Assembly: GCA_037447605.1 (NCBI GenBank)
Contig: CM074809.1
Span: 2,780,689 to 2,844,688 of the forward strand
DNA: 64,000 bases
Origin: Zygnema circumcarinatum SAG 698-1b
Lineage: Eukaryota; Plantae; Zygnematophyceae
Direction of reading: 5' to 3'
Shown: positions 1 to 62,436 of the stretch, one piece after another
How the letters are laid out: each line of letters begins with the position of its first letter
Position numbering within the stretch: position 1 is the stretch's first letter
Program-made: the position numbers and the translations under genes
Notes under the pieces: model-generated
The model's database searches: none
Told to the model about the DNA's origin: nothing
What the model saw: the letters and a program-made list of their open reading frames with translations, nothing else

Positions 1-191
1 TCGCGACTCTGCGACAAGATTCACTGACACTCTGCTCAAAAGTATTCGAAGTTTGAACGATGAAGTGGCCGGTTGAGCTTATGAATCGAGGCCAGTTTGT
101 GAAGTCAAAACACTTTCATGTGATGTCGACATCTCACACCATGACTCATTGAAATACGGTTGGAGCTCCCTAAATGGTGGAAGTGCCGTGG

Positions 192-1509
192 CTAAGCTTC
201 TTCCATGCACATCGCTTGCAGTGTCATCCAAAGGGACGACATAGTTCCAACCTGGACAAAGTAAGGGACTTAGCAAGTTGACGCCTACTAAGGCACTTCA
301 TACAGACAACTCGGGCATACAAGTCGACCTCACTTGTTTATCAGTTGCATGGAGTCTCGCACGTGCCTTCTCAGAATGCGCTCTCCCATGAAACATCAGT
401 AAAAGCCTCGTGACTTCTTGGAACATTTTCGGGAATAGTTTATGGGTCTTAGGAGACCAGAGAAGTGGAGGAGCATTAGTCACTGAGTACACAGAATTGC
501 CTGCAGCAGGTGGAAAAAGTATCTACAAACGAGAAGAAACATCGGTCAGGAAAGCATTCTAAAATGCTACTAGGCATTGTTCTAATGAATCACTTGAAGG
601 AAACCACTTACAAAAAATGCAGTGTTCATTCCTCAGTGTGTAAAAAAACCATAAATGAAATGGTGGAGTGGTTAGGTCAGCGTAGTACTGGGTCGGAGTT
701 CATCCAGTTTGAGATATAACTGAAAGGTATCGAATAAAGACTTCAACGTTGAATGGCACTCGTGAAGTTCGCCACTTAAAATGAGGAGCTGAGACTACTT
801 CAATAACTTACCGAGCATCCTCCCACCAGTCGTCTCTCCTCAGTCAAGCTGTCGATGAACAGCCACGGGTGCGTGACGTACGTCTGCACTGGCCATGACA
901 TTGCAGGAGGAATGTCTGTGTACGGGACCTGCAGGCAAAAATTAAATCCCTCGACCGCAAATTATATATAAAAAAACAAGAAATAAAAAAGGACAGCTCT
1001 ACGTCCGCCTTCCGTATACCTCATTCGCCTCTGTTACTATCGTATTTATTTCCTTAGTTCAAACAACAAGGATGTACACTTTGCTCTGTCTTACTCCTCC
1101 GTGAAAGCGAAAACTGTGACGAGCCTGAATTTCAGAAAATACACATTGAATTCCATGAGTCAAAGCAAGAATCTAACCCGTACAAAACGATACCAGGAAA
1201 GTAAAGGTTCACGAAAATTCCACCAGGCAGGAGCGCTACCTTGTCCTATCCAGACAAGCGCAACTTCTTCACATACCAGAATTTCTGAAAATGCAGGCCA
1301 ATGCATCCTAAGCACATTGCACGCATTCCTCCCCGGAAACATCCACATCGTTCCCCCTCACTCACCCGCTTCCCGCAGTAGTCGAGCCACACCGCCTTCA
1401 CGGGCGAGAGAGTGGCGTTGTATATGGTGATGGCCACTCCCTCCTCGCTGTGCATCGAGCACACGAGCCTCCCCTCGGCGTCCCTCTCCTCCTCCTCCCT
1501 CCCCGCCAT
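192..1509 (-). CDS. von Hippel-Lindau (VHL) beta-domain protein, ~172 aa, 5 exons
   Basis: Exons 1509-1366, 928-812, 719-689, 500-334 and 251-192 join in frame through GT-AG introns. The product contains VCSMHSEEGVAITIYNATLSPVKAVWLDYCGKRVPYTDIPPAMSWPVQTYVTHPWLFID, which aligns by eye to the VHL beta domain ([59 protein letters not shown]), followed by LWSPKTHKLFP. An in-frame upstream ATG at 1545 is an alternative start. The last exon is the least certain. Confidence 0.8.
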
Positions 1510-1589
1510 CGCCCCGCGCCACCACCACCTCCTGCGTCGCTCCATCTCCTCGCCATGGCGCCCCCCACTGCTTCCAAGTTCCCATCTCA

Positions 1590-1810
1590 CTGTTCCGTAC
1601 AATGTATCGCCACAACTGACACTACCTCGATACGATAGGAGATGATAACGGTACAGTATGTGTTATCAAACCGTACAGTCCTTCGCAGGGCACCTCACCT
1701 TAGGTAACAGGATTTGCAGACTTACAGGACCCCTCCAATGTACGGTTTCGTATGTACGAACAAGTCGATTGTACCGTACGGATATGAAAAGGGATAGCCG
1801 TACAGGTTTG
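1590..1810. promoter_or_regulatory. GTAC-core cluster in the divergent VHL-like/SAFE1 promoter (putative SBP/SPL/CRR1 sites)
   Basis: Eight GTAC cores in ~210 bp (near 1597, 1651, 1673, 1740, 1754, 1771, 1776, 1800), several as CCGTAC or GTACGG. They lie between head-to-head ATGs at 1509 (-) and 1941 (+). Confidence 0.55.
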
Positions 1811-1940
1811 GATTACCGTAGCGCGCTTAGCGGCTAAGTCCCAAGGCTTCCCCTTCGCTCCTCCGCCGCTAGGAGGCAGGGGAGAGAGGGCGAGGGAGGG
1901 ACGGAGGGAGGGAGGGAGGGGGAGAGTTTGCAGGGGAGCC

Positions 1941-4900
1941 ATGGCGGCCATGGCCGGAGCGAGCTCCCTGATAGGGGGATTGAAGGCTGGGCCGAATGTG
2001 GTTCGGCAGAGCATGCCGGCTGGTCGGCACTGTTCTCCATCAAACGGCTTTCCATTGGTGGAGCATCAGTTGCCTTGTTTGCCGCGGCTTGGTGAGTTCA
2101 ATTGAGAGTCGAATTTGAGATATTGTCAAGGAAATTAAATTTTTGTCTTCAGAGGCCGCTTTACTGCGTTAGTGAGAGCGGTAAATGCTTAGGCTTGCAA
2201 AGGGTTAAGCCTTCATTCGTAGGTCTTGATGGGAATCAGGAACTATACACGTTGTGGCAGCAATGTATTTGAAATTTGATAGTGAGTGGTCGATGCAGAC
2301 ATGTTGTGACTTGATCAGCACTTGATCAGCAAGGTTGAACTCTTGCATCTCAAGTTCTAGCGACCCTCCTCCCCACGTTTCTAGTTGCTTCGCTGAATGT
2401 ACAAGAAACGTGCTAATGAAGGGAAATTTCTCATATACTGTCAAAAATAAATGAATCAATGCAATGTGAGTGTTCAGATTTTTGCAAAGGTGCATAAGCT
2501 GCTCCCTGCCGGCGCACTTTTGCAAAGACATTCTACCACATTTTCTTTTTTCATCTGCTGCACGATTTGCTCTTCTTTTTTTTTTCTTCGATTTGCTCCT
2601 CTCCTTCTCTGCGCTTCCGCCTCCTGCCTCTTCTTTCTGCTTTTACCCTACTTTATTTCTCGCCTTACGATCGTCACTCAGTCCTGCTGCTTGCCTTCAT
2701 ATCTTCATACTCCAATTTCCCTAATGACATTTGTTTCTCGAGTACACATCTCCTCGCCTGTCCTTCTTGGTGGTCTCCTTCCTCCTGCTACTACACCGGG
2801 CTCGCTTTCCCATTTTCCTTCTCATTATTGATCAATGTTTCTTCGCTCCTTTACCTGACTTCATGTACTAGCGAGAGCAGTCATTGCACTGGATCTCTTT
2901 TCTTACACTTCACGTTTCACATGTTTGATCACCAGCAGCCGTCAGCTCAACATTCCGACATTGCAGGAAACACGCGAGAATGGCCTTCACTATTAGGGCT
3001 TCCTCATCGGGAACTTTGACCACAGGCCCTCAGAACGACAAGCATGAAACGGAACTCCCAGGGCGTAACCTCTCTGCTATTCATCATGAAGATGACCTTT
3101 TGCAGTGGATGTTAGAGCAGGGATTGCCGCCGTCTAAAGTTGCTCTTGAAACGAGGCCGGGTTATTCCTCCAAAGGCAAGCCCATACATCACGTGGTGGC
3201 CAGCGAGGAGCTAGTGGTGAGCATACCTGTGCTGTCTGGCGAAACACGTAAAAGAATAATGCTTACTGACTGGCAGACATTGCTTTCATTCACCGGTCAG
3301 TGATTGACATTCTAACAAGCCATGAAATTGGCTGTGCTGTGGACGTTGAACCCAAAGGAGAGGCTCAGCAACTATGAGTTCCGTATTTTCTTACCGAGAA
3401 GCATGGGTTGCTGGCCAATGGCCATCAAGCATTGATTCTTGCAATCTTGGAAAATAAACAGAAATGCAGTTGTGCACCAGTTTTTTTCGTTTTTTAAGAC
3501 AGACGTAAAAAAGTTATTCAATGGGAAGACATTGTTGCACGCCGTTTCTTTCGCTCACACCTTCACTTCTTCAAAACTTCTCTTGATTAACTCTTCGTTT
3601 CATGAAGCTCTGTTGTCTATTATCATTAGTAAATTTTAAATGTTGTTCCCCAGGTTGAGCTGTTTCGGCCTCATGCACACTTCTTGAAGAAGTTCGATTT
3701 TAGTAATGATCAACTTCTTTGCATTACCTGCAATGTATAATGAGTTCGAGGTGTAGGGGTACACAAACGAGGTCCAAAATTGCGAGTTTTCGCTTAGATT
3801 CAAATGAACATTTAGAACACATGAGAAATTTAAAGATTTCTAATGAGGTTGGGAATTGGCTTACAGCCTGGAGATGTTGTGCTACGAATCCCTAATCACT
3901 TAGTCGTCACGTTGGAGCGTGTACTTGGGGACGAGACTATAGGTGAACCCGGTTCAGACCTTGTGCATGTATATCATTTTTGCATTCGTATGTATATGCT
4001 GTAGATATACACATTCAAGACCAGAGAAGAATGACAGTAAGTTGTATGTTTGGCAGTCGAGGATACGCCCAACGGAAGTGTTTTAGTGATGTCTTGTTGT
4101 TGTGATGGCCGTGTATGGCGAGTAGACTTGGAAGAACTCGAATTTCACATTCATGCAGTTGTTGCTCGACTTAGTTGTGAATGCATGTACAGGGCATGGC
4201 TCTGTCATTCTGTATGACAGCGACTTAAAAGTACTTTGTGGGCATCATGGCATGGGTGGCATACAGCGGAACTTCTCACAACAAACAAGCTATCTGAACT
4301 CGCATGTCTGGCGCTTTACCTTATGTACGAGAAGAAACAGGGGAAGAAATCCTTCTGGTATCCATTCATCCATGAGCTTGACAGACAAAGAGGGCGAGGA
4401 CAGCTAGCAGTGGAGTCTCCACTGCTGTGGTCGGCGGAAGAAGTGGAAGAATACTTTGAAGGCAGCCCCATGAAGGTGACACCTCTTTATCCAGTTTGAG
4501 TCTGAGGAGAAAGTGACCAGACCTCATGGCAGCTCGCATTGCAGCAAACATACATGAATACAGTTGATTGCCCATGTCCACATAGACAAAAACTACCATT
4601 TCTATCGTCAACTATGCTGCTTCGTGTGTGCTTGTTGTGCGTGTGTGTCTCTGTGTTTGTCGTTGCGGTATCCTCTGTGGCTGTCTTGGTGTTCTCCTTG
4701 TTAGTACGAGGTACGGGACAGGCTTTATCGTCACAATCTTGATGCCATTTTCATTTTGCGTCCTCCTTGGAGCCGGAACTTGCATTGCAGCTCCTTCCTG
4801 TTTGTCTTATGGTGGAGGAAGTCCATTCACAACTCAACTCAATATTCTTATGTCTCCTCTCACCTAGAGGACTTTATACTTTATCGTTTGCGGCTATATC

Positions 4901-11696: not shown

Positions 11697-14600
11697 ATGA
11701 GGCTCGTGAGGCTTTTAGAGGGATGGAAATATGACCTTTTACTATTTGCCTTGTCTCTGCGCCTGTTTCAAGGTAGGAGGGAAACAGCATCAAAAAGTCA
11801 AGGCCTTAATGGGAGTGGAGCCAGGATGTCGCACTCCTCTGCTGTCATTCAAGTTGTTGGGCAGTGTTCTGACAATGCAGCATTTCGATGTTCACTGCAG
11901 GCTTATGATCCTTTTTGAAGCAACCATTGGCACCGCAGACATGAACTGGGATCATAGCAGAGGGACTGCTGTTGCTATCGATGTAAGTTGCTTCTCAAGC
12001 ACCCTCTCGCCATGTTGATCGCTGGGCAGATGTCCCTGTTTGACATTCCTGATTGTGTTTGCGCCCTGAGCATCTTTTCGACGATGCTTCAAGTTGAGTA
12101 ATTTGCAAGACAGCGACGATGCATCTTCCGTGTTCATTTCTGCACCACCTGACGCGGAATCCGTACTTTTGCCGTGATCGCAGGCCGATCAGTCGCTGAG
12201 GGCAATCGGGGAGCATGGACCCTCTCCCAACCTTCTACTGTTTTATAGTGTGGAGTCAGGCACATGGAATGAGGCTCCTCAGCCACATTCAGAAGTGCCA
12301 TTGGAGCAGGATGTTGGCCCTCCTCGCAGATCATTGTCATCTCAACAGAGTGCACCGCCTGATGCACCTGATGTCTCCCCCACAGCGTTTTCACCTGTGG
12401 AGACACCCAGCAGCCCATTATCTTTCTCTCTCTCGTCCACCGATGCACCTGCCTCTGCCCCTTCCGCAGATGTATTCCCGCCACCATTTCCACAACTCAG
12501 TCCAGCTACCAACTCACCGTCCCCCATAAACGACGACTTTTCTCCTCCGACACCATTGGTCAGTCCCGTGGAAGTCCCTGGTGTACCCTCCTCTCCTGCT
12601 TTTGCGCCCCCTCCACGACGAGTCCAAACGTCAAAGAGCGTGTCTTCCTCTCCTCCGCCTCTCCATCCCCCTTCAAGACTCACCACCCCAACTCCTGTCC
12701 CACCTCGTGGTCCTCCTTCTGCAATGTCCCCCTTTCCCTCTGTTTCCCCTCCCGCTCCTCTTGAATCTCCACCTTCTACTTCTCCGCCGGCACCTTCCTT
12801 TCCTACTTCCCCAGCTCCACTTTCCCCTTCTGCTCCTCCTCCCTCCGTTCGCCCTTCCACTCCCCCTACTGCGTTTCCTTCGTCTCCCCCTCTCCCTTCC
12901 ACTTCCCCCTCCGCATTTCCGCCTCCTCCTATATTCTCTTCCCCTGCGTCTCCCCCGGCCTCGTCTCCTTTACCTTCGATTTCACCTTCCTCTCCCTCTC
13001 CACCTCCTCGTACTCCTTTTGCTCCTTTCCATTCCCCTCCCCCTTCGTCCCCTCTCCGTCCCCCACTTTTCCCTCCTCATCTTCCGCCCCTTTCCCCTTC
13101 TCGCCTCCCTCCCCATTCTTCCTCCCCTTCTCCCGTGCTTTCTTCTCCTCTCCCCCCTTCTCCCCAATCCCCTCGTCCCCCGTCCCGTCATCCTGTCCCT
13201 GCCCCTGGGCCTTCCGTTTTCCCTTCTCCTGCCCCTTCCTCTTCGTCTTCCCCATCCCCTTTCTTTTCCCCTCCCTCTCCCTCTACCCCTTCCCCTTCCT
13301 TTTCCCCTCCCTCTCCCCCTACCCCTTCCCCTTCCTTTTCCTCTCCCCCTCCCTCTTCCCATTCTTCTCCTTCTCCTTCACCCCCTTCACCTCATCCCCC
13401 TTCCCCGCCTCCTCCTTTTTTCTCTCCCCCTTCACCTTCTTCCCCTCCCCCTCCCTTTTCCCCGTCCCCTTCCATTTCCCCTTCCCCTCCCTCTTCCCAT
13501 TCTTCTCCTTCTCCTTCACCCCCTTCACCTCATCCCCCTTCCCCTCCTCCTCCTTTCCTTTCTCCCCCTTCACGTTCTTCCCCTCCCCCTCCCTTTTCCC
13601 CGTCCCCTTCCTTTTCCCCTTCCCCTCCCTCTTCCCCTTCTTCCCCTTCTTCTTCTCCCCATTCCCCTTCTTCTCCTTTCCCTTCTCCCCCTTCATCGTC
13701 TTCCCCTCCCCCTCCCTTTTCCCCGCCCCCTTCCTTTTCGCCTTCCCCTCCCTCTTCCCATTCTTCTCCTTCTCCTTCACCTTCTTCACCTCATCCCCCT
13801 TCCCCTTCTCCTCCTTTCCTTTCTCCCCCTTCACCTTCTTCCCCTCCCCCTCCCTTTTCCCCGTCCCCTTCCTTTTCCCCATCCCCTCCCTCTTCCCCTG
13901 CTTCCCCTTCTTCTTCTCCCCATTCCCCTTCTTCTCCTTTCCCTTCGCCCCCTTCATCTTCTTCCCCTCCCCCTCCCTTTTCCCCGTCCCCTTCCTTTTC
14001 GCCTTCCCCTCCCTCTTCCCATTCGTCTCCTTCTCCTTCACCCTCTTCACCTCATCCCCCTTCCCCTTTTCCTCCTTTCCTTTCTCCCCCTTCACCTACT
14101 TCCCCTCCCCCTCCCTTTTCCCCGTCCCCTTCCTTTTCCCCTTCCCCTTCCCCTTCCCCTTCCCCTTCCTTTTCCCCTTCCCCTTCCCCTTCCCCTTCCC
14201 CTTCCCCTTCCCCTTCCCCTTCCTTTTCCCCATCCCCTCCCTCTTCCCATTCGTCTCCTTCTCCTTCACCCTCTTCACCTCATCCCCCTTCCCCTTTTCC
14301 TCCTTTCCCTTCTCCCCCTTCACCTTCTTCCCCTCCCCCTCCCTTTTCCCCTTCCCCTTCCTTTTCCCCTTCCCCCTCCCTTTTCCCCTTCCCCTTTCCC
14401 TTCTCCCCTTCCTTTTCCCTCCCTTTTCCCCTTCCCCTTCCTTTTCCCCTTCCCCTCCCTCTTCCCCTTCTTCTACATCCCCTTCCCGTTCTCCCCCTTT
14501 CTCTCCTCCCCATTCGCCTACTTCCCCTCCCCCTCCCTTTTCCCCTTCCCCTTCCTTCCTTCCCCTTCCCCTCCCTCTTCCCCTTCTTCTTCTCCCCATT

Positions 14601-17600
14601 CCCCTTCTTCTCCTTTCCCTTCTCCCCATTCGCCTACTTCCCCTCCCCCTCCCTTTTCCCCTTCCCCTTCCTTTTCGCCTTCCCCTCCCTCTTCCCATTC
14701 TTCTCCTTCTCCTTCACCCTCTTCACCTCATCCCCCTTCCCCTTTTCCTCCTTTCCCTTCTCCCCCTTCACCTTCTTCCTCTCCCCCTCCCTTTTCCCCT
14801 TCCCCTTCCTTTTCCCCTTCCCCTTCCTTTTCCCCAGCCCCTTTCCCTTCTCCTTCGCCTTCCCGTTCCCCTTCCCCTTCCAATTCCTCTTCCCCTCCTT
14901 CTGGCCCAGCCCCATCCCGTTCCGAGTCCCCTTCCCCTGCGTCGTCCCCTTCCGCCCCCCCTTCTCCTCTCTCTCCTTCCCCTGTCTCTTTTCCTGCCTC
15001 ACCCCCTTTTATTACCTCATCCCCTCCTCCTGCCTCGGCCCATTCCCCTGCTCCTGCCCCTGCCCCTGCTGTGCCCGGTATCCCTCCCCCTTTTCCTGCA
15101 TTCGCCCCAACCCCTTACCCTGTTTCTCTCTCACCGCCCCCCTTGGAGCCTGCCACTTCGCCCGGTCCATCTCCCTTCACAGTTGCGCCTGCCCCGTCTC
15201 CAAGCATCGTCACCCCAACCATGCCGCCCGGCCTATCGCCAAAACCGTCCTTCCACCCCTATCCAGCTTCAGGGCCTTCACCTGTGCCCTCTCTAGCAAA
15301 CCCAGCTGCTGCTCCTGTGCCAACTGAAGGCTCTCCATCGCCTATTGAAGCACCTTCACCAGCTGCTTCTCCCATTGTGGCGCCTTCAGCTGGGCCAACA
15401 CCTGCTCCATCTCCTTCTAATGAAGCGGCAGCCCCTTCACCAGCACTCGCTCCATCTTCGTCTCCTTCACCAGGTTTGTCCCCTCCATCTCCTGCCAAAG
15501 GGGTTCCTTCTTCTTTTCCACCTCCCAATCCAGTACCTGCCTCCATCTCACCGTCCATCCCACCCCCATTTCGTCCATTGAAGCCCACAATCCCAAGTTC
15601 CGGAGTTCATTCACCACCACCACCCCGTTCATCATGGTCTCCACAATTGCAGTTCCCTCCGCCATTCTTTCACCCTCCAAGCATTGCCCCACCCAAATTC
15701 CCATTCACCCCCCCTCACCTGTTTATCAGCCCTCCATTCCACCGACCTCCTAAGCCCAAAGGTATGTCTGCTTCAAGTAAATTCATTATCTTTGCAAATG
15801 AGACTTAGTCTCCAATAGATTTGTCTTCAGATAGTCCAGATCTTCCTTCAGCGTTTGGACTGCTATTTCCCCCGCAGTATCCATGCTGCAGACTCTGCGG
15901 GTATGGATCTACTGCAGCGAGCATCCAGTTCCATGGACTGCACTTGAATACCTTTTGAATAAGAGCTTTTTAATGTTTGTGGTAAAAGGCCTTCAATGCC
16001 GCTTCCTCTATTCCTCCTAGATTTGTGCAACTATATCAAATCTGAGTTGTCTCACAGGTTGCAAGACTTTGAACGTAATTGAACATATGCAAATGGAGCT
16101 GACTATAGCTCAAACGATAACGCTTGGATTGTATCTGCCCTATCAGTTATTTCGTGTAAACCTGACGAAGTCTGGCAACGTCACCGCACCTGCTTCTTTG
16201 TTCCGCTTGAATGTAGCGTCAAGTTCACCCGATAGATTTTGGAAGAAGACTGGTTTATCTGCTATACATTGGGAGGAGCGTACTGCATTTTTCTGTCTTT
16301 TTGTACTAGATCTGTATTTGGTGGATGGGAACGGTGGGCGTTGATTCGGAAGGAGAGAAGGGCGGCAGGTTGGTCGGAGAAGGATGAGAATGAGATGAAG
16401 TGAAGTCTCTCCTTGTGCCGTTGTTCTGGGTGGACAAGACAATACTGCTCAGTTACTGTGATCATGGGCATGGTAGATTCTCGAGACGGATGTTTTATCT
16501 TGCAGTGGGCTCTTTCTTAGTGCTTATCCCAGTTAATATTGGAGGCTATTTTCCTGGAAGCTTGCGTCTTCGGATACGTCAGTTTATGTTCTGAAGTCAT
16601 TCCTATTCTTGCAGATAGTACCCCCCCCTCGCCAAGCTTGACACCTGCAACCCCCTTTCCAGCGCCGTCTTCACCTGCTGTGTTACCGCCGGAAGTGGCT
16701 CCCGTGCCCTTCCCAGCTCCTTCCCAACTTCAACCTCCACCTATTCATCCCCCTCTGCGCCACCCTCCCCCAGCACGTGCGCCGTCACCATCTCCTGCAG
16801 ACACCCCACTCCCTTCCCCTTCCGCTGTACCTCCTCCATGGCATCCTCAAACCCGTCCCCCTCAGCGTCCTCCTCAGCGTCCTCTCCAGCGTCCTCCTCA
16901 GTATCCCCTTCATAGTCCCCCACTGCCACCTCGACGGAATCCCCCTCTGCGTCCCCCGCAGAGTCCCCCACAGCGTCCTCCACGGTATCCCCCTCAGCGT
17001 CCCCCAAAGCGTCCGCTTCCACCACCATCTCAGCCAGCTTCCGAGCCCGCCTTTGGTCCAGTTGACCCGCCGTCTGTGCTTCCCCCGGGACACGCTCCGT
17101 CTCCTGCAGCACCTTCACAGTCACCACTATCTCCACCAAAACTACCACCAGCAGATTCTCCTGCCCCATTAGGTGTCCCTATCCCACCTCCCGCGGATGC
17201 TCCTTCACCATCCCCTGCGGATGGGCCATCTTCAAAGCCCGAAGAGGTGAGGCCCCCTCCTGGGGGGAGCCCTGCACCCTTCAGCCCGCCATTGCAGCCA
17301 CCACCCTCTCCCGTACCTATCACCAGTCCTGCTCCGCCACCCTATCAGACTCCTCCGAGTTCTCCCCCGTCCCCTCAAACTTCCCCCTTGGCTCTGCCGC
17401 CACCTCCTCCCGACACGAGATGTGAGTCTCTGTTCTCTGTGTGGCAACGAGCAACTGCGTCTCTGCAATCTTCTTAGTGTGTTTGTACGTATCGCCTTAC
17501 TAACTGGGACTGATCTGTGCTTTTGAATTATTGGTGGCCAGCCTGTCCGGCATGCAACGAGACACAGTACATTCCGCCTGAAGGAGCATGCAGATGCATG

Positions 17601-56908: not shown

Positions 56909-59900
56909 TATTTCTCTCTAACTTTCTTGCCCCATGACAAGAGTCTGCGTGCTTTCTTTCCCCCACGACCGCCAGCACCCTCTTGCCGCTCTCTCTCGCC
57001 CTCTCTCAGCCTCTCTCAGCCTCTCTCAGCCTCTCAGACACGTGCGAGGCGCCCGCCTTAGTGCGCGTCGCCACCGCCGTCCCGAACAGTGCGTCCACCA
57101 CCGACTGCTGCGGACCCTCCTCCGCACTCACTTCCTTGTGAAGCTGCAACACCCACTCGCAAACCCCAACTCCTGGTCAGTCCTCCAACAAACACATGTC
57201 TCAATCTTGGAGCTAATTCCATTGCACTTTACTCCAGGCATGCAGACACACTTCCGCAGCTTCCAATGCTAAAGTGTGGACTCCCTGTTCAAAAGAACCA
57301 TACTTAACAATCAATGAATTGGTCAACGTATCTGTCCGCTCAGTTCTCCATTCCGATTTGATGTTTGTAAGACGTTTCAGACTGATGATCTGGTAGCAAG
57401 AGAGGCAAGGGCTACCTGCTCCAAGAAAAAGCATGAAAGACGCTGAATGCGCTCTCCCAGAGGCTTGCCCTCATTGCCCTCCCAGTCATCCATGAGACCC
57501 AATGCCGCCGCCTCCGGCATTTGCCTCAGTGCACGAATAAGATTCGTTGGCTGCCAAAACCCAATGCTCTAAAAGTCTGTGAGGAAAATCAAGCATAGAA
57601 CCTGCCAGCTTGGAAACACGTGCATGTTGCAAGGTCGAAAGAGGGGGGTACAAAAAATAGAAGAAGCCGTAGAAAGAGAGGATTTGACTAAAAGAAGGAA
57701 TAGAGGGAAAAGGGAATCAAGTAGCAAGAACTGGGGAGGACGAGGAGAGGTGGAAAATGCCGTCCCACCTGACACGTGCTTCTCTCTGCCAGTGCAAGCA
57801 TGTGCAGCACAAAGCCAAGCTCACACGTGAGGCAGAACTCGCGCTCACAAACATGTCCCGTGACCATGTCCTTGAGCTCTGGAGTGAAGTATAAGACCTG
57901 CAGGAAAATGGGTTTGTTATCCCTTAAACTCAAGTTCTCTATCCTCATTCAAATAAGCCTTCATCAAAGGAGCTACGGCAAATGAAGAATTCAGTAGCAA
58001 AAACACATAAAAAACAATTTGCAGCCAGGGATGCAAAAGGACTACCAGCATGCATGGAGAAGTAGCAAACGCAGCTGAATTCTCAAGTGCTACAGGACGC
58101 TTAAGCTCAAAGGTTAGAAATGCTAACGGGCATAGTTCTCTCTATTCGCTTTAAGTCGAAGGTGCTCTCACCTGCAGCAGAGCATTGATGTGGCTGTCAG
58201 AAAAGTCATTCTCAAGCCCAGCAAAGCGCGTTCGATTGTAGTAGCTAAAATCGAACTCCTCGAATTTCGCTGACTGTGACTGCTTGATCTCCACGCGGCG
58301 ATACCCTTTGGGCAACACTGGTTTCGGAGCGTTATGGCTGCCTCGCGATCCCACTAAAGAAGGATTGGCTCCATTTTGTGCACCTCCCTTTATGTCATCC
58401 CCCTGTCATTTCCCTCTTGCACCTCAAAATTAAGAGCTACGTGCGCAAACTCGCCTTATGCCAAAGCTCCAAACATTCATTAAGAAATGATCCTGCTTTG
58501 TGCTTTGTGCTACAGCGAAGCCCATGAAGAGGTTGAGAAAGGAAACAGAACATGTGCTAATCACTAGCTCATGCGTGCACAAAAAAATCTCGAAAATTTG
58601 GCTGTAGTCGCCAGCTGCAACCTACCACGTTCAATTTTTGCTTTAAGGGTGTCCTTACTCAGACTTCTGAGACTGCTGAGAAGGGCATCCTTACCTCACA
58701 AACTTGCCGCCTGTTGCGTAAAGCAGCGGTTGCCTCCAGCGCAGCTGCATATGACATTCCTCTCCGCCATTGAGGATTTTGCACATAGCCGACAAAGTCC
58801 ACCACACTCATGGCCTCCTGCAGGCTGCCATCGATTGTCCTCGGAGGCAGTCCGACTCGAAGCATCGTATTGGTGTCTAGCACAGAGAGGGCCACATCTG
58901 TAGCCTCTGGTCTGCACAGATACCTCAGATGCCAATTCCAATGGCGACAACAAGAGCACAATTGGTCCACTGCCTCAAGAACTTATGACATGGGTTTTCC
59001 AAGAAATTCAAAAGTGGCAGATGCCATACTTGCGACAAAGTACTGACCTGTATGCCTGAGAGAAAGAGTCGTGTTCGTGCAAAGGCAGGAGAGGAGGTGG
59101 AGGTGATGGACTAGGCAGCTCAAGTGGGTGGGAGAACATGCTGACGGGTGCATCCTCCCTACTGCTCCACAAATGCACAAATCCCGCCGAGTCTCCGAAG
59201 GCGAGCAGCTCCCCAGATGACGACACGTCACAGGCCAGCAAAGCAGCTCCATCACAGTCAACCTGCCCACATTTCGAGGTCCTATCTACTGTGAAATTCA
59301 GTCATAGAAAAGGTAGCATTGTAGAATGTAACGTCATTCCACAGCAATACCGGAGAGCAACATTGGCAGTATAAGCATAATATGAAGAATATAGCGATAC
59401 AACACAGCGTGTATCAGTCAGCATCATACTTTCCTGCAGAAGATATTTGACAGGTAGACGAAGTACGACTTCAATCATCAGCAATTCGAGTACAGCTTGT
59501 AGACACCTCACCTGATAGCTCTGAACAGCAATACCGCCAATCTGCACATCAGTCAGCATTATAGCGCCACTCGCAGAGGCGATCAGTAGAACTGATGAAA
59601 ATTTAGGCTGAAACCGGACGACGCTCGGTCCTGGAGGAAACGGAATATGTGTAAGCGCTCGGACAGCTTGCCTGATATCAAAGACCTGCATCAGCCATAC
59701 CCATGCAGACACATTAGAAGAAAGTAATTTCCTCATCTGATATGATATCACAAAATCTAAAGAGCATGTGTGCGCTAAATAATGAAGAATAAAGCAAAGC
59801 ACCTTGATGAGAGGATCGCAGAAAATGCGACCGCTTCGTTGCGTTAGTCCACAAGATACAAGCAAGTCACCCTTCACGTCTAGTGCTTGCACAGGCCCTG

Positions 59901-62436
59901 CATACACAAAGTATCAGCTTCACAGGTGTCCTCACATGTTGGAGGACGGAATTAAACATACAAACAAAAGCAGTTTCTCTATCTCTACCAATGGCAAACA
60001 AGTAACCACCCGATTGGCCGATAGTCTCTCCTCCTTTGAGCTAGAAGGTCCTATCTAAAGCGAACGATACTACAGTCACTGTGGTATGGAAAAGCAGGAA
60101 ATAATATCGGTGGCTTGTCTCACCCAGATGAGCCTCTACAGTGCTCTCCACTCGCATGGTGCGCACATCCCGCAGTGACAGTTCTCCTCCCACTCCTCCA
60201 CAGGCCACAACGCGACCATTACTGCGCAGCACTTCCACTCCCTGACCACCGCTCTCCTGCCATTCACACAATCCAAGGGATTCAGAATGCTGCCTGGACT
60301 CTAAAACGACTTATTTCATTAGAACAAGGTGAAAATTCAAAGTACATCGCAACCAGGAGACCTTACTTCGGACAAAACCCGCGCGGTTGGAAGGTCAAAA
60401 ACTGCCACTTTGCCACTTGTATGGCCTAGCAGCACGCGTGATCCACCGATCCTCTCCCATTCCACACAACGCAAATCAGCCGCAGGCTCTCTGCTTGGCA
60501 ATACAGAACAAGAGCATAAAACTGACTGCATTGTCAGACTCCTCGCAATCCTCAAATGTACACTTCCTACTACCAGAAATACAGAAGACTCGTGACGCGT
60601 CTCCGCCAGACACATTCTCACAGCAGTTCGGCAGCATCTTGACTGTAAAAGAATTCCAGCTCCTAAGACAATCAACTCTGAAACAACCATTCAGGAACAC
60701 TCGTCATATACTTCGCTGTCTAACATCTGGATCATCAAGGTAACCTGCACAAAGATGCAAGACCACATGCCATCATGATACTTTTTATAATAATTTATCA
60801 TGATAATCATAACAGAAAAAAATGTGAGACTTAAATAACACATTACCTGTATGTCATGATTGGAAGACCACCACGGGCATGCAGCTGCAGGGCATCAGCG
60901 CTGGCTGAGAGAGGTCCATTGGCAGTCACAAGCAGCCCTCTTGTGAGCACGGGTTGAACATGCGCCTTCCACTCCGCGTAACGGTCCAATGAAGGACAGG
61001 CGTACCCTTGCACGGCTCCCTGCCAGACCCAATAGTAGTCATAATGGAATTATTGTGTTTCATAAGACATTATCTAGCATTCATCTGGCATGTAACTTTC
61101 ACAATATGTTGAACATTTTTTAAAATGTTGAGCATTTAATAGACAGACAAAGAAAAGCTGATTGAATTGCGAAGGAAAATGAAAAGGACCAAAAGCTAAG
61201 CTAGAGCATTAGTTGCCATTGACAATTGGATGCGAACTATAGACATGTTTATGAGACTCAAGCAGGCCATCTCATTGATGAAAGGGATCAGTCCTGGATT
61301 CTCCGAACAATTGATTGTTAAAGGTAGATTAACTTCCATCCGCATTCGCCATACCAATTGACAGTTTCAACGAAATATTTGAGTTTAGTGAACCCATCTG
61401 TTCAATTGACGTTTTCTTCATCCTTCTTTTTATCCAATGGAATGAATCTAAAATTCCGCTGTTAAACGCTTACTCCCAAACAGCTCCATCTTAACACATC
61501 TACACTAAATATCAAAAAACATATGTGCGCTTTTTTTCACCATCAACTCACAATTAATGATCTGTGCCATGGTACAAATTTCATTACCTTCATTCCACAT
61601 TTCCAGGAGTTTCAAATAAAAATCGTCAGTTCAACGGCTGCGAGAGCGATTTCTTATCATAAAAACACCGTTCGCAAGTTTGACTTCATTCTGTTGCTGA
61701 AGTTACACCGGGAAACTCACTTCATGAAACCAATGTTCAGAGAAAATAGTTCTTTCCCTGTTTCATTAGTTTGGTGGCTACTCTTCTGCTGCTCCATTAT
61801 CAGATGGAATTACATGTTCTTACATTTCCTTTTCTTTTTCTTGTATAATCCACAATGGTTGAGACACTTACAAAGGCTTCGTAAGGAAAAGTGAAAGATT
61901 CCAGTTTGCAAACCAATTGTGTCCAATTATGAGCAATTTCTGGCACCTTAGGGACGACATTACACTGCATGAAGGTCCTCCACTACATTCAATGCAGTTT
62001 ATTTGTGAAACCCGTGATCAGTTTCTCGATTGGGAAAAAGCGAAAATTGGATGAAACTTAAGCGTCAAGAGATTTCGAACGATTGTGTCAAGATTTAGTC
62101 TTTGATGAAATCCGCAAGCTTTCGGAGAAACAAATACCGAAAATTAAACCAAAATCTCTCACTCTTGCAATATGAAGAGTGCACCACCAGCGACGTATCA
62201 ATGTTGTAGTGAAGGTTTGAAATAAATATAGAGTGTACGGCTTTCTGATAAAAATGCTAAGTGATGCCACACATTCCCCAGCGCGCGAGGCAGCAGAAGC
62301 TAAGGCCATGGACGCCCACCCCGCTCGAGCCCGTCCAGAGCAGCTCGTGAGCAGTATCGAAGGTCGCAGCGCACACGGCCTCGTCGAGGCGGTGCTGCTG
62401 TGTGGAGGAAACCTCGAACAAGCCCTCGCTCATCAT
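51031..62436 (-). CDS. PAN2: PAN2 poly(A)-specific ribonuclease catalytic subunit (WD40 + pseudo-USP + DEDDh nuclease)
   Basis: First exon 62436-62320 ([14 protein letters not shown]). WD40 exons ([37 protein letters not shown]). [53 protein letters not shown]. Nuclease [79 protein letters not shown]. Stop at 51033-51031. Confidence 0.95.

Follow-up and report, generated by a model that had tools for sequence, protein, structure and literature searches.

Does the plant lineage possess a receptor of the animal VHL type? The PHD-VHL pair, by which hydroxyproline is written and then read, is commonly regarded as having arisen in animals, and oxygen sensing in plants is ascribed to a different route. 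The question is raised by a gene at the left end of a 64-kb stretch of DNA from the alga Zygnema circumcarinatum (64,000 nucleotides, referred to throughout as the window). From the letters of the sequence, an initial annotation had described the product as a VHL-like protein with an intact hydroxyproline pocket and a BC-box in its last exon, and had suggested that it might be an animal-like ubiquitin-ligase adaptor.

Gene structure and transcription

Three exons of the gene lie inside the window on the minus strand (Table 1). They have GT..AG borders, each ends in phase 0, and jointly they code for 150 residues. Seven public runs from three studies match the stretch, and transcript contigs from four of them, belonging to three studies, were aligned to window positions 1-2200. 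Both exon joints, 926/928 to 1364/1366 and 522 to 812, were found in all four runs (three studies). The contigs skip 929-1365 and 523-811 exactly at the GT..AG borders, and the runs, which carry no RNA label on record, are therefore taken to be of spliced-RNA origin. Contig depth over the exons is 85-590, of similar order to that of the neighbouring gene, while introns 1 and 2 are covered by low-depth collinear contigs only. Translation probably begins with the ATG at 1509, because the RNA contigs extend to 1525 (giving a 5' UTR of at least 16 nt) and because the N-terminus aligns with the start of a homologous protein, P0005, which is described below.

The product of exon 1 has an acidic N-terminus, in which a signal-peptide-like stretch is absent, followed by the first strands of a VHL β domain; the window protein is probably soluble and either cytosolic or nuclear. 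Exon 3 supplies the last β strands (from ILFPP onward), a conserved motif following the β domain (the post-β motif) and a variable linker.

In one run, X5, an exon-depth contig joins a foreign 29-nt 5' end to an AG acceptor at 1470/1469 within exon 1 (minus strand, 1468-1470). The variant is in frame and has the alternative N-terminus MEDTAGDTEA, followed by LVCS...; the 29-mer was not found in the window, and this 5' end may stem from an alternative first exon, from a difference between strains or from a chimeric assembly.

Table 1. Features of the VHL-like gene and its promoter, with positions counted from the first nucleotide of the window.
Feature	Position	Strand	Remarks
Promoter GTAC cluster, 8 cores	1597..1803		mostly CCGTACA/TGTACGG; shared with divergent plus-strand gene starting near 1931
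Exon 1, coding part, 48 aa	1366..1509	minus	start ATG 1509-1507; donor GTGAGT at 1365; RNA joint to 928
W41 codon	1389-1387	minus	exon 1; equivalent to human W88
Intron 1, 437 nt, GT..AG	929..1365	minus	skipped by exon-depth contigs in 4 runs; acceptor ends AG
Exon 2, 39 aa, VHL β domain core	812..928	minus	both junctions confirmed by RNA; donor GTAAGT
Y51 codon	922-920	minus	exon 2
T64 codon	883-881	minus	exon 2
Y65 codon	880-878	minus	exon 2
H68 codon	871-869	minus	exon 2
W70 codon	865-863	minus	exon 2
Intron 2, 289 nt, GT..AG	523..811	minus	joint 522 to 812 in 4 runs; acceptor ends AG
Exon 3, 63 aa	334..522	minus	donor GTGAGG, used at 333; RNA collinear match stops at 334
Conserved 31-residue post-β motif, residues 104-134	382..474	minus	consensus APPLLWSP..HK.FP..F.....LLLM.H.R
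First part of intron 3	1..333	minus	contig depth 5-12, against 85-590 in exons
Final exon proposed by the initial annotation	192..251	minus	ends TLQAMCMEEA, then stop; intronic in the dominant transcript

The VHL β domain and its pocket

The Pfam VHL profile (PF01847) matches exon 1 over profile positions 1-32 with 13.3 bits, and exon 2 alone over positions 35-68 with 24.5 bits (E 2.9e-5), the latter above the gathering score of 21 bits. A search of the PDB sequences with the 39 residues of exon 2 matched 24 distinct sequences, and every one of the 24 was pVHL, aligned with no gaps. The assignment of a VHL-like β domain in the initial annotation is borne out by the exon 2 match and by these PDB hits. 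A local HMM built from 14 other VHL-β sequences gave 74.4 bits with the spliced product over residues 14-97, running smoothly across both junctions; the share of exon 2 in this score is partly circular, since the 14 sequences were retrieved with exon 2, and the share of exon 1 is not. The domain ends within exon 3, with ILFPP at the position of human ELFVPS, and the HMM alignment continues through residue 97.

The residues that form the hydroxyproline pocket in human pVHL map onto the window protein without gaps: W41 corresponds to W88, Y51 to Y98, T64 to S111, Y65 to Y112, H68 to H115 and W70 to W117. The earlier description of the pocket, with serine 111 replaced by threonine as the one change, stands, and the exon junctions have been confirmed by RNA.

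Relatives of the window protein

An exhaustive HMMER search with exon 2 against 1.84 billion representatives found 19 proteins at E<=0.001. The closest relative, P0005, is a protein of 239 aa attested only by transcript contigs, from five runs; its ungapped alignment with the window protein spans 139 residues at 49% identity (E 8e-49). P0005 matches the Pfam VHL profile with 51.6 bits and the pVHL chains with E 6e-7. A word-index protein search gave no match for the exon 1 ORF, and for P0005, alone or aligned with the window exons, it returned only P0005 itself. Among the other HMMER matches, P0014 is an animal-type VHL with a BC-box directly after the domain and P0018 has a tandem double VHL-β domain; the remainder are multi-repeat or multidomain proteins with 1-10 VHL-β copies, some of them with N-terminal signal-peptide-like stretches. 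Six of these proteins (P0001-P0004, P0006 and P0009) are 1700-2000 aa long and have up to ten tandem VHL β domains, each with the signature W..Y..TY.THPW; we found no mention of this multi-repeat architecture in the literature.

A feature search of the ESM Atlas likened P0005 to a 294-aa cluster of Pfam-VHL "hypothetical proteins" with a score of 0.97 (216/256 features) and to a 224-aa Pfam-VHL cluster with 0.87; the commonest phylum of both clusters is Chlorophyta. A green-algal VHL-β family is already present in the databases, in line with the caution voiced in the initial annotation that the domain as such might already be known, and we found no publication on these green-algal proteins. 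A shape search of the same resource recovered the domain in animal VHL, in PUB-VHL proteins of diatoms and, in bacteria, fused to DPP IV/S9 peptidases, to ATLF/M90-type domains and to SH3_3. A fusion of SELENOM with pVHL in Aureococcus has been described in a paper on algal selenoproteins (PMC7539508).

Structure prediction was carried out on P0005, and the evidence for the fold concerns this homologue rather than the window protein itself; MAFFT had misplaced the exon 3 fragment and part of exon 1, and the folding alignment did not include these two rows. AlphaFold2 modelled residues 21-80 of P0005 with pLDDT >90, and the C-terminal half, after about residue 82, with pLDDT <60. When the model was compared to the PDB with Foldseek, the top 50 matches were all pVHL chains, superposing at 1.0-1.2 A over 62-65 residues with 28-30% identity. 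P0005 is thus predicted to have the pVHL-type β-sandwich fold.

An alignment of 16 VHL-β domains, bacterial repeats included, shows how widely the pocket is kept: the residues at Y98, H115 and W117 do not vary at all, and W88, P116 and a threonine at 111 are nearly invariant. Threonine, not serine, is the usual family residue at position 111, and P0005 has phenylalanine at the position of Y112. As judged from these aligned sequences, an intact pocket is a hallmark of the whole VHL-β family rather than a sign of special closeness to animal pVHL, and part of the conservation may be structural. Relatives across the family share the pocket, and its value as an indication of HIF-like oxygen sensing is weakened by the occurrence of the same residues in bacterial repeats.

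The breadth of this conservation bears on an alternative in which the protein would be a general binder of proline-rich peptides, or a scaffold, linked neither to prolyl hydroxylation nor to oxygen, its pocket being kept for the stability of the fold. We consider this unlikely. It would suit the secreted multi-repeat and peptidase-fused proteins of bacteria, in which HIF-like signalling is implausible and the same residues are kept nonetheless, and it would suit the substitution at Y112 in P0005; but serine or threonine at 111 and histidine at 115 persist with few or no exceptions among the aligned sequences, which, judging from pVHL structures, would exceed what fold stability demands of solvent-facing pocket residues.

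The C-terminus and the proposed BC-box

The exon-depth contigs of all four runs depart from the window at position 334 into one shared sequence, the in-frame translation of which continues as KGPASPVKRL after exon 3; one contig runs 796 nt past exon 3. The 30-nt RNA continuation beyond 334 is absent from the 64 kb even when three mismatches are allowed. For the neighbouring gene, which served as a control, the corresponding loose end could be placed in the window, at 2939. Over positions 1-333 the only coverage is by collinear contigs, at the depth level of introns 1 and 2, and this together with the off-window continuation of the RNA identifies 1-333 as the first part of intron 3. The rest of the coding sequence, in one or more exons, and with it the real C-terminus, lies past the left edge of the window.

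The final exon that had been proposed, at 251-192, is consequently not the one to which the dominant mRNA is spliced from 334. Its letters were correctly reported: TLQAMCMEEA and a stop are present at 224-192 (the motif itself at 224-195), in phase 0 and behind an AG at 253-252. Their use as an exon is not seen in the RNA, in that the joint of 334 to 251 occurs in none of the contigs of the four runs. Across all six reading frames of the window the BC-box pattern turns up 34 times by chance; for the 333 nt that follow exon 3, the expected number is 0.09. TLQAMCMEEA is a chance match in an intron of the dominant mRNA, a statement that concerns this mRNA, as the contigs cannot rule out a rare isoform using 251-192.

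No BC-box, of consensus [STP]-L-x3-C-x3-[AILV], was found, with either the strict or the relaxed pattern, in exons 1-3 and the next 10 RNA-derived residues, nor in the full-length homologue P0005; conservation of the box in a homologue, which might have been expected, is thus not seen there. In P0014, the positive control, SLKDVCAWKI stands where the box is expected. KLFPKMFQEV, which has the spacing L-x3-M-x3-V, was considered as a BC-box at the canonical position and rejected, being not conserved: P0005 has YFPENFRKK there. Pfam searches at E<=10 gave no match to the VHL_C alpha domain with its Cul2-box (PF17211) for exon 3, P0005 residues 85-239 or shorter pieces; none to the SOCS-box for exon 3 or the C-terminal pieces of P0005; and none to the F-box (PF00646/PF12937, about 45 residues in three helices) for exon 3 or any piece of P0005.

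A receptor of the pVHL type, to which a last exon at 251-192 of the dominant mRNA would contribute TLQAMCMEEA for docking Elongin B/C, is accordingly very improbable. The DNA does contain the decapeptide, preceded by an AG and in phase 0, and the consensus is fitted; against it stand the splicing of exon 3 to a site off the window in four runs, the intron-level depth of 1-333 and the number of chance occurrences of the pattern. In pVHL and in P0014, moreover, the BC-box adjoins the β domain, and here it would follow only after some 60 extra residues; P0005 is without one; and vascular plants are reported to have no Cul2 homologue (PMC13223302). With the BC-box intronic and with no BC-box, VHL_C, SOCS-box or F-box detected in the exons or in P0005, the proposal of an animal-like ligase adaptor is not upheld.

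A conserved motif after the β domain

What follows the β domain in exon 3 is instead the 31-residue post-β motif. Identity to P0005 is 61% in this motif, compared to 52% in the β core and 6% just after the motif, and the drop from 61% to 6% indicates that the motif is under constraint. It occupies the place of the BC-box helix of pVHL, has no BC-box match of the strict or relaxed kind, and is helical, with low confidence, in the P0005 model. No family was found by Pfam at E<=10 for five pieces of the C-terminal half, the motif included; a PDB sequence search with the C-terminal half returned only chance-level rows of ankyrin and toluene monooxygenase, and the ESM Atlas feature search with residues 98-140 gave nothing usable. 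Near its C-terminus, P0005 has a single helix resembling the first helix of an F-box, LPWDLLFHIIRL, of the form LPxDLLxxII; one such helix does not make an F-box.

These two elements are the ground for a further alternative, a cullin-RING receptor of a non-VHL-box kind, in which the post-β helix, the F-box-like helix seen in P0005, or both would bind Skp1 or another adaptor. In its favour, the most conserved segment of the protein sits where pVHL has its adaptor-binding helix, P0005 has the LPxDLLxxII helix near its C-terminus, and a synthetic fusion of the SLY1 F-box with the VHL β domain is functional in Arabidopsis (PMC13223302). Yet no piece matched the F-box, SOCS-box or VHL_C families of Pfam at E<=10, and the helix is one where three would be needed, fails the relaxed first-helix pattern at its last position and lies in a low-confidence part of the P0005 model. 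We consider such a receptor unlikely.

Promoter, neighbouring genes and the rest of the window

The gene shares its promoter with a divergent neighbour, and the eight GTAC cores found there within 204 bp (Table 1), where the window averages 0.86 per 300 bp, tie for the highest density in the window; only two other places, at about 31.2 kb and 36.9 kb, are equally dense. We take cores of the CCGTACA/TGTACGG form to be of the site type of SBP-domain proteins, CRR1 and SPL7. In Chlamydomonas, CRR1 acts in the response to copper as well as in that to hypoxia, so the cluster could link the VHL-like gene to oxygen status; three GTAC clusters in 64 kb may equally represent a general promoter element.

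The divergent gene lies on the plus strand at 1931-2091 and from 2939 onward, with the ATG of its first exon at 1941 and RNA splicing from 2091 to 2939; its exon 1 encodes an N-terminus rich in Ser, Ala, Gly and Pro that resembles an organelle transit peptide. At about 12200-15800 there is a 3.5-kb polypyrimidine (CT-rich) tract of low complexity, with nested periods of 6, 36, 138 and 261 nt, a GC skew of about -0.7 and long spurious ORFs. On the minus strand, at 59305-59907, an ORF fragment has a weak match to the PAN2 N-terminal domain (27.9 bits) and probably belongs, as one exon, to a gene for the PAN2 deadenylase. Pfam searches with ten long ORFs of the window gave nothing beyond this PAN2_N fragment, and Rfam and tRNA scans of the window gave no match.

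A proposed function

This analysis yields a solid domain assignment and corrects the gene model; evidence for an animal-like ligase it does not provide. We put at roughly 60% the reading that the gene is an expressed member of the VHL β-domain family in which a lineage-specific C-terminal part replaces the alpha domain of pVHL, and which acts as a peptide reader with an output other than a BC-box. The parts of this reading differ in strength. That the gene encodes a real VHL-β protein without a VHL box is held with high confidence; that the protein reads proline or hydroxyproline peptides, as its pocket residues suggest, is about an even bet when taken by itself; and a coupling of the window protein to ubiquitin ligation is doubtful. 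The gene product is a VHL-β protein of variant architecture, probably serving as a hydroxyproline or proline-peptide reader.

In the preferred reading, the β domain would bind a short extended peptide by burying a proline or 4-hydroxyproline between walls formed by W41, Y51 and W70, with T64 and H68 placed so that they could hydrogen-bond the 4-hydroxyl. The fusion of VHL-β domains to proline-specific peptidases (DPP IV/S9) fits a portable module for binding proline or hydroxyproline peptides. Since the protein has no signal peptide, its ligand would be a cytosolic or nuclear protein, which might be hydroxylated by a cytoplasmic enzyme of the PHD/PhyA type. On the output side, the post-β motif, being more conserved than the domain itself, is the best candidate, together with the C-terminus beyond the window; motif and tail would dock a partner, possibly a cullin-RING adaptor.

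The several threads can be drawn together in one scenario, which we offer as a speculation of low probability: green-lineage algae that keep a cytoplasmic PhyA-type hydroxylase would also keep a cytosolic hydroxyproline reader for Skp1 or another PhyA substrate, feeding an SCF-type ligase through the post-β motif and the C-terminal helix, with the GTAC promoter tying expression to copper or hypoxia signalling. If this were true, there would be an oxygen-dependent writer-reader pair outside animals that operates without Elongin and Cul2, and a natural precedent for the engineered sensor that fuses an F-box to the VHL β domain.

The wider interest of the preferred reading is that a candidate reader module is present in the plant lineage as well, uncoupled from Elongin and Cul2. 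Should hydroxyproline be bound, this would point to a cytosolic target of prolyl hydroxylation in algae and would offer a hydroxyproline-binding part of plant lineage for synthetic oxygen sensors.

Comparison with known systems

Human and animal pVHL, the VHL-box receptor of CRL2 (PF01847 and PF17211), resembles the window protein in the sequence of the β domain, in the fold predicted for P0005 and in the identical spacing of W88, Y98, S/T111, Y112, H115 and W117. It differs in what comes next: searches of the transcribed exons of the window gene and of P0005 revealed no VHL_C, BC-box or Cul2-box, and the window protein has after its β domain another, lineage-conserved motif and a longer tail. 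To our knowledge, no HIF is known in this alga.

Plants are described as lacking a Cul2 homologue, so that pVHL cannot plug into plant ligases, and the solution adopted in the same study was to fuse an F-box to the VHL β domain (PMC13223302, 2026). The resulting SLY1(F-box)-VHL-β chimera in Arabidopsis is like the window protein in placing a VHL β domain in a plant-lineage cell without Elongin/Cul2; it is unlike it in being synthetic, with a bona fide F-box and with human PHD3 and HIF-ODD as its companions, whereas the window protein has no demonstrable F-box (PMC13223302).

The green-algal clusters of the ESM Atlas (294 and 224 aa) are similar to P0005 in size and domain content, as judged from their features and descriptions. 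The bacterial repeats and fusions, the diatom PUB-VHL proteins and the Aureococcus SELENOM-pVHL protein have the same β domain with the W..Y..TY.THPW signature; these non-animal VHL-β proteins are secreted, multi-repeat or enzyme-fused, whereas in the window protein one domain stands between an acidic N-terminus and a helical tail of its own.
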